Source: Selaginella moellendorffii (lineage: Eukaryota; Plantae; Lycopodiophyta). From it: a stretch of 64,000 bases of DNA. Position numbers and translations under genes: made by a program. The notes below the pieces were generated by a model. The model was not told the origin of the DNA. It saw nothing but the letters and a program-made list of their open reading frames with translations, and ran no database searches. Shown here in pieces: positions 59,790 through 64,000 of this stretch. The stretch spans positions 444,236 through 508,235 of the forward strand of contig NW_003314321.1 in NCBI RefSeq assembly GCF_000143415.4, in the 5' to 3' direction. Every line of letters starts with the position of its first letter. Position 1 is the stretch's first letter.

Positions 59790-60616
59790 TTTAATCATAA
59801 ATTCATATATTTTTATGTTGACTATACCACATGAATATAACACTAAATTCATAAAATTGTAATAAATATCCACATACCAACCTTGTTTATAAAAATAATG
59901 AACTAAATTGAACATTGGAAAAATTTAATATATGGTGTTATTTATTTTCTCAATTATTAAATTAACTATTAAATATTATTAATTTAATAATACTTATTAA
60001 AGATGGGAAGCAAGAAAGCTTACATATGAGTAATAATTATAGCATAAAAAAATGTGACGATATTAACTTTGTTCCACTGCTTTAGCCACTCCATTTTTGT
60101 CACTGGTAGGATGCAAGCTAACTGCATGCTTAATTAGCATCTACAATCTTCATGGTGAAGAAAGATGCTGTTTTGGTCAATGGGAAGTTGTGAAGCAGGC
60201 AATTATATTCACTTGCCATAAATATCAACTACTTGATGGTGCTCATTCAAAGTTAATACATTTGGATCTTTGCAGCAGACATGAACAAATTGTTGACAAG
60301 AGAATTGTTGAGTTTAAACTAAGATACCTTTGTGTTCTTAGTTTCTGCTTCCTTAACTTTACCTTTGGTAGAACATCAGATGAACTACTTACTTTTTTTA
60401 TGTCATGAGAAGTAGAAATATTTCATCAACCTGGAAATTCCACCTTTCAGTTTTTTATAACATCCACTGCCAAGTTTTTTCAAAACTGGAAGCTTGAATC
60501 CACTTGATGGTACCTTTAAACTATAGACTAAAACAGATTTGAAGGCAAAGGTAAGTGCTAGTACTAATTTAAAATTTAACATGATCTAGCTATCCTGTGT
60601 GCTCCACTCAAGCACA

Positions 60617-60624
60617 GCCACGTG
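60617..60624 (+). promoter_or_regulatory. G-box (GCCACGTG) upstream of PSAF
   Basis: CACGTG about 85 bp before the ATG of a light-regulated photosynthesis gene. Confidence 0.5.
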
Positions 60625-60706
60625 TAGCAGCAAAGATTACCATTCATCCATCATCCTATCTCCTTGCTCTGTTTCTGGGGCTCTTCTCCACCAACATCCA
60701 TCTACC

Positions 60707-61462
60707 ATGGCTGCAGCATCGTCCGTCGCCCTCTCCAGCTTGAAGAACCCCGCCATGGATGTCTCCTCGCGCTCCACATTCTCGGGTTTGGCATTGCCCC
60801 CTCGAGGCAGCAGCGGCAGCGCCAAGAGATCCAAGTCTCTCCTCGTCCAGGCGTCCTCCACCTCGGGCGAGCAGCAGGCGGCCAGATCCAATGCTGGTAG
60901 AATGGCGGCTGCGCTGGCGGCGGCGGCGATCATCGGCAGCGCTCCAATCGTGGCGGCGCCGCCCGAGGCAGCAGCGGATGTAGCCGGCCTCACCAAGTGC
61001 AAGGATTCCGCGGCCTTTGCTAAGCGCGAGAAGAAGGAGATCAAGAAGCTCCAGTCGCGGCTCAAGCTCTACGCCGACGACAGCGCGCCGGCGCTGGCGA
61101 TCAATGCCACGATCGAGAAGACCAAGCGGCGATTCAAGTTCTATGGCGATGCTGGGCTCTTGTGTGGCGCGGATGGATTGCCCCATCTCATCGTCGATGG
61201 CGATCAGCAGCACCTGGGCGAGTTCGTCTATCCGGGGCTCATCTTCCTCTACATCGCGGGATGGATTGGATGGGTTGGGCGGAGCTACTTGATCGCTGTC
61301 AGCACTGAGGCCAAGCCCACGCAAAAGGAGATCATCATCGATGTGCCGCTGGCGACGAGCTTGATATGGAAGGGATTTGTGTGGCCGCTGGCTGCCGTGA
61401 GCGAATTCAGGAATGGGAAGCTAGTGGTGGACGCTGCCAACATCACCGTCTCTCCCAGGTAG
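60707..61462 (+). CDS. PSAF: Photosystem I subunit III precursor
   Basis: Bipartite transit peptide ending AAA, then [41 protein letters not shown] and EIIIDVPLA. Confidence 0.97.
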
Positions 61463-61686
61463 ACGAGGATCACAGACAGCTGCGCGAAAGAAGAAGATCC
61501 AAGAACACCGTGTAATTTGTGTAATGAGAGATGGTTTCTAAAATCTCAGCTATCGCGTTGATCGATTCGTGCTCGATTCATTCGCGCTCGATTGGATCAC
61601 AGGAAATATTTCGCAAAGATTCTATTTTCCCCCAATTTCATATTTTTAGGGTTCTAGAGGAAATCTTTAGGGCTCTAGGGGAAGCT

Positions 61687-62827
61687 ATGGCGCGCGCGCT
61701 CGATGTTTGCCCTGCCAGATGCGTGGCGTCAGGTATTCTCGATTATCTCGCTTCCAGCAGCTCATTCCTGTCCAGCAGCTGGCGCGGTGCCAACGAACTC
61801 TAGCAAGCCACGCCTGGCGCTCGTCCGTGGAGTTCCACACACTTTCTCCAGCTGCATTACGATGGAGAAGCCTGAGGCGGCGATCGATGTGGAGCTCGCG
61901 AGAAAGCAGCATTCGGATTACGTGAACATCCTGAGAGGTTCTCTTGTCCCTCGTTTTCTTTCTCGATCGAGCTTCCATTTTCTCACATTTCGTGTTTTCC
62001 AGTCCAGAGCTCGTCGATCACGTCGTGGAGCTCTCACCGATGGACGAGTTCCCCGACTGCCCTTTCATCGAGGACACCGCGGTCGTGATTGGATCCAAAG
62101 CTCTCATCACTCGTCCTGTGAGTTATCTATCGTATCTATCACAGATAGTCAGTGAACTCACGATAACAGGGAGCAAGTTTGAGGCGTGGAGAAGTCGAAG
62201 CAGTGGAGGCAGAGCTTAGAAATCTTGGATTCGAGATTCACAACGTCGAGCCTCCCGGTACCATTGATGGTGGCGATGTTCTCTACGTCCAAAACACCCT
62301 CTTTGTTGGAAAGAGCATGTAAGGCACCTCTCTATAGGTGAACTCAGTACTCACTCTTTTACATCTCCTTGATTAGGAGGACAAACTCGAGAGGAATCGA
62401 GGCACTGGCACGGGCCTTCTCTCCAATACCTGTTGTTCCAATCGACGTTGCTGAAACCTTGCACTTAAAATCAGGTACTGGTATTCTTTCTGTTTTCTAA
62501 AGTCTCTTGCTGCTTTGCTGGCTTGCAGTCTTGTCTCCGCTTGGCCGGAACTCTTTTCTGGCCGAGGAGACCTTCCACGCCAAACAGATGCTCGAGCTGA
62601 TCCGAAAGGCTTCCATGGATTCGTGCGACTGCGTCTTTACTCCACACCAAGGCGCGGCAAATCTCCTTTGGGTGGGAAACACGCTCGTCTATCCGTCTGC
62701 TTATCCTTGCGGAAGCGATCTGGCCGAGTTGTACGCAAACTCTGCCGAGCGCGTCATTCCAGCCAACATTTCAGAGTTCCACAAAGGTGATGGAGGTTTG
62801 ACATGCCTCTCCATTGTCATTGACTGA
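61687..62827 (+). CDS. N(G),N(G)-dimethylarginine dimethylaminohydrolase (DDAH)-like amidinotransferase-superfamily enzyme, multi-exon
   Basis: Spliced product contains ALVRGVP, ARKQHSDYV, FPDCPFIEDTAV, ITRPGASLRRGEV, IDGGDVL, RTNSRG, LHLKS and SEFHKGDGGLTCLS. The exact start (61687 vs 61703) is uncertain. Confidence 0.87.
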
Positions 62828-64000
62828 TCTGAAACTTCTTTTAAAACTCATTGGTTACAAGTCAAGAGGATCGCAAAGTTTTCGGGTGGGCTTTGAGACA
62901 AACTGGGACTCCCAATAGTGAGTTGTAGATGGTCAGCATTCTCTTCCGCAGATTCAAAGAGGTTGATTCTACCTTCTTCGAGGAGATCCACATTCCCCCG
63001 CTTTTGGGCGACCACACTCCCTGGAACGCAATCACATAAGCTGGATGGAAAAGAGCTTTCTCCCACCTGGAATGCTTCTGCCACAGAGGCAGTTTGCTTC
63101 TTAGAAAACTCGTACCTTAACCTGTGAATCAAGCTTGCAATCTCATGATTCCTTTTGCAAGAGCAGAGTTCATAGCTTTGTTTTATGGTGTTGATCAGAT
63201 CAGGTCATGCATGCAGGTTAGTAGAAAGAAATTTCACATGAAAAGAGTGACAAACGTTAAATGAGCCACCAAGAGGAAAGAAATTTTATCACCTACAACT
63301 CCATAACTTGACAAGATCCACATTGGAGGCTGCCTTTGGATTTGAAACAATCACTTCAGCTCCGTAGGAAAAAACTACCAATTAAAATGTAGACAGAAAT
63401 GTTATACTTTCTTCATAACATTTCTTCTCTGCCTTCCAGATGGCATGCTTGAGAAGTGACTCACCACATTGGGGAGGAGTAAAATGAAGAAATATTTGTA
63501 GTTTTACTTTTCTATTACCTCCACAGACAAATAGCGTGCTTTTCCAATCTAATTAGACCATAAATCACATGAATATTCTAAGAGTATTCAATGTTCTAAG
63601 GGCTGACTTGAGTGGATGAGGAATATACAATGATGACCACCAAGGCAAGTATGGGTAATTATAAGTTTTTAGTGATGCCAATTTGGTTTGACAAATATTT
63701 TTATAAATTTTAGAAGTTGATGAATCAAGTTTTATAACTTTACTTAGAGAAGTTTGCAATTGATTATTTTGATGATATTTTAGTAGCTTTATGGAGGAAT
63801 ATGAGATGTGAGTTTTGCAACTTTTGACAGACAATAAGTTCTATTTGAAGTTAATTTATTAAATATCTAAAACATTTTATTTAATTATATAGTGTGAGAT
63901 CATAATTGACTGATTTATGCTTTCAATAATGTATAATCTTTGTAATTTCTTTGGTATGGCTAAATTTTTTTAACAGTTTATAAAAGACTTCCTAGAGATA

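Follow-up and report, generated by a model that had tools for sequence, protein, structure and literature searches.

The window, by which we mean the whole 64,000-nucleotide stretch of Selaginella moellendorffii DNA that was analysed, carries a spliced gene of the dimethylarginine dimethylaminohydrolase (DDAH, or dimethylargininase; EC 3.5.3.18) family. Reading of positions 61000-64000 located an ATG at 61687, a stop codon at 62825-62827 and, between them, coding sequence in six segments, interrupted five times by a short GT..AG stretch (Table 1). Directly upstream, on the same strand, lies the nuclear gene for the photosystem I protein PsaF, and the DDAH ATG falls 225 bp past its stop codon. 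The productive mRNA encodes 286 residues from ATG 61687, or 338 if translation starts at 61531; residues of the window protein are numbered here from ATG 61687. In a scripted check, the RefSeq protein XP_024544846.1 could be placed without a single mismatch, including its stop, on 61531-61732 and the five downstream exons, and this protein or its residues 53-338 served for full-length comparisons. The initial annotation, which proposed an intact spliced reading frame carrying the motifs EDTAV, DGGD, LHLKS and GLTCLS, is thus borne out by the codons of the window, by the joints in transcript contigs and by the exact protein mapping.

At the annotation level, the identity of the gene is already known. 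RefSeq names the S. moellendorffii product "N(G),N(G)-dimethylarginine dimethylaminohydrolase 1" (isoforms X1 and X2, XP_024544845.1 and XP_024544846.1), and an older model is EFJ14900.1. An exhaustive search with exon 6 returned as its top match, at 99% identity, a cluster of six S. moellendorffii proteins from scaffolds of 6.95 and 1.25 Mb, in which the other names are those of older 'hypothetical protein' models. These scaffolds represent the two haplotypes of the assembly, and both carry the gene. The XP_024544845.1/XP_024544846.1 pair, from the 1.25-Mb scaffold, is identical to the window over the first coding segment (67 residues), where the other allele has three differences. The Marchantia (BBN14875.1) and Sphagnum orthologues are likewise labelled dimethylargininase in UniProt/GenBank. 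Therefore, the earlier description of an uncharacterised enzyme stands insofar as our literature search found no study of a plant DDAH, of its assay or of the phyletic pattern described below, but not in the sense of an unrecognised gene; the interest lies in the phyletic pattern and the function. An apparent wheat DDAH in the literature proved to be only a table label, 'DdAh'.

Table 1. Coordinates of the DDAH gene and its upstream neighbour, in window positions.
Feature	Position	Strand	Description and evidence
PsaF gene	60707..61462	+	single exon; photosystem I subunit III, PF02507, E 2e-81
Doubtful N-terminal extension of RefSeq model	61531..61686	+	52 codons; overlaps the stretch covered by PsaF 3' UTR contigs
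Exon 1	61687..61732	+	46 nt, coding from ATG 61687, ends in phase 1; joint 61732/61779 in X1, X4 and X5; XP_024544846.1 mapping
Intron 1	61733..61778	+	46 nt, GT..AG; NAGNAG acceptors; contig joints
Exon 2	61779..61937	+	DDAH core starts here (LALVRGVP); contigs, DDAH alignment, protein mapping
Intron 2	61938..62007	+	70 nt in the productive form, GT..AG; joints skipping 70 nt in X5 and X3
Exon 3	62008..62117	+	110 nt; substrate-binding D85 (62055-62057) and E90/D91 in IEDTAV (62070-62075)
Intron 3	62118..62169	+	52 nt, GT..AG, phase 0; joint in four of four runs
Exon 4	62170..62318	+	149 nt; R110 (62182-62184), DGGD with D138 (62266-62268)
Intron 4	62319..62376	+	58 nt, GT..AG, phase 2; joint in four of four runs
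Exon 5	62377..62474	+	98 nt; R156 (62378-62380), catalytic H184 in LHLKS (62462-62464)
Intron 5	62475..62528	+	54 nt, GT..AG, phase 1; joint in four of four runs
Exon 6, coding part	62529..62827	+	D275 (62789-62791), catalytic C280 in GLTCLS (62804-62806), stop 62825-62827

Family membership, residues and fold

Searched singly, exons 3, 4, 5 and 6 matched positions 47-78, 79-127, 129-162 and 195-248 of the NCBIfam dimethylargininase model NF045660, in collinear order, and exons 4 and 6 each matched DDAHs of solved structure, from human and from Pseudomonas aeruginosa. Collinear matches from independent exons argue against a chance pattern. Exon 2 alone gave no match to solved structures, the single exon translations gave none in Pfam because the pieces are too short, and a word-index search with exon 6 returned only one 103-residue transcript fragment owing to its length window, which makes it blind to full-length relatives. 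At full length, the alignment spans residues 14-283 of the 289 of human DDAH1 (E 1.2e-39) and residues 27-252 of the 254 of P. aeruginosa DDAH (E 8e-31). The best NCBIfam model was again NF045660, covered from position 2 to 248 of its 249; the score of 169.8 bits lies under the cut-off of 340, which is set for a narrow bacterial equivalog, and NF045658, also a narrow bacterial equivalog, scored 126 bits against a cut-off of 450.

The residues expected of a DDAH are retained. The functional residue numbers of human DDAH-1 given here were checked against the alignment. The catalytic triad C280, H184 and D138 aligned with human C274, H173 and D127, and the substrate-binding residues D85, E90, D91, R110, R156 and D275 with human D73, E78, D79, R98, R145 and D269. 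The initial annotation had assigned the catalytic Asp to EDTAV, which is incorrect: it is DGGD whose first Asp (human D127) serves as the catalytic acid, and the Glu and Asp of EDTAV are substrate-binding (human E78/D79). Across 30 aligned homologues from streptophytes, bacteria and Euglena, D85, E90, D91, R110, R156 and C280 were invariant and D138, H184 and D275 at least 90% conserved.

An AlphaFold model built on the homologue alignment (pLDDT 90.1, pTM 0.86) is disordered only at residues 1-22, and its predicted pentein fold, a five-fold beta/alpha propeller, is closest to DDAH. The top 23 matches to the PDB were all DDAHs (TM 0.76-0.86), led by human DDAH-1 (TM 0.86, rmsd 1.5 A, 36% identity) and followed by the P. 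aeruginosa enzyme; RESC5, ArgZ/AgrE, amidinotransferases and ADI came after them at 13-19% identity. With the human alignment, the conservation across 30 sequences and the modelled fold, the proposal of a DDAH-family gene with intact catalytic residues has held up.

Comparison with known systems reveals both kinship and divergence. Human and bovine DDAH-1 (PDB 7ut0, 7usz, 2jai, 2c6z) resemble the window protein in full-length alignment, in predicted fold and in all nine catalytic and substrate residues listed above. Unlike them, the window protein lacks short stretches of the region that links the catalytic His to the C-terminal strand, and it carries an N-terminal extension of 27 residues (or 79, from the RefSeq start) that is disordered in the model. 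The bacterial dimethylargininases (P. aeruginosa DDAH, 1h70 and 3bpb; the Streptomyces-type NF045660) belong to the same family, collinear and with the same Cys and His motifs, whereas the window protein falls below the equivalog cut-offs of 340 and 450 bits and its gene has introns. At the DGGD position, the window protein has Asp where the Pseudomonas/Euglena-type group has Glu. The N-terminal domain of ArgZ/AgrE (6jv1, 6lrg) and trypanosome RESC5 (8dpk), which PDB entry titles describe as part of the RNA-editing complex RESC, share the pentein fold (TM 0.74-0.79).

The weak link in the DDAH reading is the substrate, which is deduced from sequence. A consortium study bears the title 'dimethylarginine dimethylaminohydrolase 2 is not a dimethylarginine dimethylaminohydrolase' (PMC10256801), and, as far as that title goes, DDAH2 illustrates that family membership and retained catalytic residues do not guarantee ADMA hydrolysis. 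The protein could instead be a DDAH-fold hydrolase of another guanidino substrate, e.g., arginine, with deiminase- or dihydrolase-like activity, or another modified arginine, in which case the database name would be misleading. Such a substrate would fit the broad ADI family PF02274 being the sole Pfam model above threshold (34.5 vs 22.8 bits; DDAH_eukar reached 13.7 vs a threshold of 23), the failure of all three dimethylargininase models to reach their equivalog cut-offs, the fold held in common with the ArgZ/AgrE arginine dihydrolases, and a lid residue that differs from that of DDAH-1, with T or I aligned to human L30. However, the dihydrolase and deiminase models fared far worse than the roughly 170 bits of the dimethylargininase model: arcA, PRK01388 and Arg_dihydro gave 26-27 bits against cut-offs of 414-489, and the dihydrolase model for ArgZ/AgrE gave 26.5 against 450. 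Identity to DDAH-1, moreover, is twice that to ArgZ (18%) and exceeds that to amidinotransferases and ADI (13-16%); in the fold search, ADI and ArgZ stood at 15-18% identity, with E-values more than 10 orders of magnitude weaker than those of the DDAHs. Every substrate-contact residue of DDAH-1 is also kept, including F88 (human F76). We therefore regard a different substrate as unlikely, and methylarginine hydrolysis as the better reading of this protein.

Transcripts, start codon and alleles

A run search returned 20 matching runs, all from one organism; those from at least nine studies contained 0.45-0.63 of the sampled words, approximately the exonic share of the stretch. Transcript contigs of four runs from four studies (runs X1, X3, X4 and X5) were aligned to 60400-63400. 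The runs, whose label as RNA is a guess, contain cDNA because they yield contigs without any introns. All five introns are seen as contig joints, each in three or four of the four runs, which confirms the predicted splicing, and the presence of spliced contigs in all four establishes that the gene is expressed.

Two of the introns have alternative acceptors. The NAGNAG at the end of intron 1 lets exon 2 begin at 61776 (RefSeq isoform X1, 339 aa) or 61779 (isoform X2, 338 aa), which explains the two RefSeq isoforms; the contigs show 61779 only. A second acceptor of intron 2, 5 nt upstream, moves the start of exon 3 to 62003, leaving an intron of 65 nt, a shifted frame and a TGA stop at 62086-62088. 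This 65-nt splice occurs in the only spanning contig of run X1 and of run X4 and in one of two in X3, and the in-frame 70-nt form occurs in X5 and X3, although assembled contigs lose minor variants and neither the ranking and proportions of isoforms nor the transcript ends can be read from contig depth. With the frameshifting splice present in contigs of X1, X4 and X3, part of the DDAH mRNA is non-productive.

Were the frameshifted form dominant, as the contigs of X1 and X4 might suggest, the gene would be in the course of being lost in Selaginella, with little or no active enzyme. This is improbable. The in-frame form is found in two runs, the contigs do not allow the isoforms to be ranked, and tandem acceptors separated by only a few bases occur frequently, in many cases with a coupling to mRNA decay. 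Furthermore, the catalytic residues are all intact, and both haplotype alleles retain an open reading frame with one difference in the 286 core residues. At the sequence level, the protein is under purifying selection.

The position of the start codon was considered in relation to the neighboring PsaF gene. In X3, X4 and X5, the depth of PsaF contigs is much above that of DDAH contigs, and the PsaF contigs reach 61604-61635, positions that belong to the DDAH coding sequence of the RefSeq model. The DDAH contigs start at 61641-61646, and a single X4 contig is continuous from 61438. The break between the two sets coincides with variant letters at 61636 and 61643, which are expected to split the assembly graph, and thus it does not fix the transcript start. 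The haplotype alleles differ at four amino acids, of which the 52 codons ahead of 61687 account for three and the other 286 for one, a split with a chance of roughly 0.013 by our own binomial estimate. Similarly, four of the six variant letters in the gene fall at 61636-61673, and the two in the core coding region occupy third codon positions by our reading of the frame. This concentration of allele differences and variant letters before 61687 favours, without proving, ATG 61687 over the RefSeq ATG 61531 as the true start.

Orthologues from Marchantia, Chlorokybus, Mesostigma and Sphagnum have N-terminal extensions of 56-73 residues that are rich in Ser/Thr and Arg/Lys and contain almost no Asp or Glu; bacterial relatives are without such extensions. 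Such a composition is typical of organelle transit peptides, as which the extensions of these streptophyte orthologues may serve.

At the 3' end, transcript contigs extend as 3' UTR to about 62865-63076. Low-depth contigs past the main 3' end were also observed in X1 (62878-63138), X3 (to 63110) and X4 (to 63076), and the sequence is AT-rich after about 63100. The low-depth signal at 62878-63138 may belong to an extended 3' UTR or come from a transcript of its own.

Distribution and descent

The best named matches to residues 53-338 of XP_024544846.1 came from seed-free streptophytes: Diphasiastrum (58%), two species of Riccia, Marchantia, Physcomitrium, Ceratodon, Sphagnum, Mesostigma, Klebsormidium and Chlorokybus. 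These were followed by a MAG labelled Deltaproteobacteria (43%) and then by many bacterial dimethylargininases (37-42%). Among the 120 best matches (at least 149 bits, in a collection including NCBI nr and UniRef), none was named as a fern, gymnosperm, angiosperm or chlorophyte. The exhaustive exon-6 search yielded only 29 clusters, and none of the members checked bore a seed-plant name. The suggested retention in seed-free plants therefore agrees with the protein databases, which name seed-free streptophytes as the only plants among the best matches; on the same databases rests the apparent absence from ferns and seed plants.

Outside the streptophytes, a genome scan found the family to be widespread in bacteria and archaea (at least 593 prokaryotic loci); the closest of these, at 43%, were in MAGs either labelled Bdellovibrionales or unclassified. 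Five loci (L016, L030, L036, L057 and L059) belong to Asgard-labelled MAGs (Promethearchaeota, Hodarchaeota, Thorarchaeota), and their homologues are 34-37% identical to the plant protein; these could be relevant to where eukaryotic DDAHs ultimately came from. A separate set of long proteins (P0010, P0017 and P0019) aligned with residues 25-60 of exon 6 several times over, in 6-10 repeats each. P0010 is from Streptomyces lasiicapitis, and one member of its cluster is named beta-propeller lectin. The similarity is probably fortuitous, arising from a repeat unit, rather than a sign of homology to DDAH.

In a maximum-likelihood tree of 77 sequences, the land plants formed a starred clade (SH-aLRT 98) in which lycophytes, liverworts and mosses each grouped together, and the streptophyte algae were basal to them (support 80-94). 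A wider starred clade (99) united the streptophytes with a small number of bacterial MAG proteins, and Euglena was placed elsewhere, among other bacteria. The tree was built without animal or fungal DDAHs, and a Euglena-seeded search for other eukaryotes gave almost only bacterial proteins. The streptophyte orthologues (Marchantia, Sphagnum, Physcomitrium, Diphasiastrum, Klebsormidium, Chlorokybus and Mesostigma), 41-58% identical to the window protein, thus form one clade in the order of the species tree.

Gene structure provides a second line of evidence. Four introns, in phases 1, 0, 2 and 1, are common to Klebsormidium, Physcomitrium, Diphasiastrum and Selaginella, and the exons between them measure exactly 110, 149 and 98 nt in all four. 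The introns themselves differ greatly in size, at 46-70 nt in Selaginella vs 7-15 kb in Diphasiastrum. The orthologue of Marchantia is intronless, which suggests that its lineage either lost every intron or exchanged the gene for a retrocopy. Shared intron positions and exon lengths speak for vertical descent rather than contamination or recent bacterial transfer, and they trace the gene in this lineage back at least to the ancestor that Klebsormidium shares with land plants. Accordingly, of the two origins that the initial annotation had set side by side, vertical from algae or horizontal from bacteria, the former is the one found: the gene tree follows the species tree, and four intron positions are shared. 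Deeper in time, the streptophyte gene may stem from an older eukaryotic ancestor or from bacteria, in the latter case perhaps by a transfer that reached the ancestor of streptophytes long ago.

The overwhelmingly prokaryotic membership of the family, and the 43% identity to MAG proteins labelled Bdellovibrionales or Deltaproteobacteria as the nearest non-plant relatives, might suggest bacterial contamination or a gene recently acquired from bacteria. Both are refuted, with negligible residual probability, by five spliceosomal introns removed in RNA, the PsaF gene next door, the presence of the gene on both haplotype scaffolds, the intron positions common from Klebsormidium to lycophytes, and the tree; the short introns had been read in this sense from the outset. 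The gene is therefore vertically inherited from streptophyte algae.

Proposed function and meaning for plants

Taken together, the locus is a nuclear, expressed and vertically inherited DDAH-family gene of S. moellendorffii, whose product would probably hydrolyse N-omega-monomethylarginine (NMMA) and asymmetric dimethylarginine (ADMA) to citrulline. In plants, protein arginines are methylated, and protein turnover should therefore release free ADMA and NMMA. In the proposed reaction, these free methylarginines, set free on the breakdown of methylated proteins, would be attacked at the guanidino carbon by the thiolate of Cys280. Methylamine or dimethylamine would leave with formation of a thiouronium intermediate, which water would resolve to citrulline, and the citrulline could go back into arginine synthesis. 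The physiological context would differ from that of DDAH-1, since land plants, and hence the spikemoss host, to our knowledge lack a canonical NO synthase, the enzyme that ADMA and NMMA inhibit in animals, and regulation of NO synthase is therefore unlikely. The enzyme would thus serve to break down methylarginines and recycle their nitrogen, not to keep inhibitors of NO synthase in check. On the disposal of ADMA and NMMA in plants, our literature search found no paper.

The occurrence of a conserved, expressed DDAH in algae, bryophytes and lycophytes, together with the lack of any named one in ferns or seed plants, suggests an ancestral, NO synthase-independent catabolic role for DDAH that was followed by loss. 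More broadly, and as a tentative proposal, there may be an old streptophyte DDAH lineage, dating at least from the split between Klebsormidium and land plants, that clears free methylarginines without NO synthase, is perhaps sent to an organelle in several lineages, and was lost before or within seed plants. If so, seed plants would need another route for ADMA and NMMA, and plant methylarginine catabolism would be directly testable in Physcomitrium or Marchantia. The value of the present analysis lies in a checked gene model, in shared-intron evidence of vertical descent and in the experimental opening that transformable bryophytes offer.
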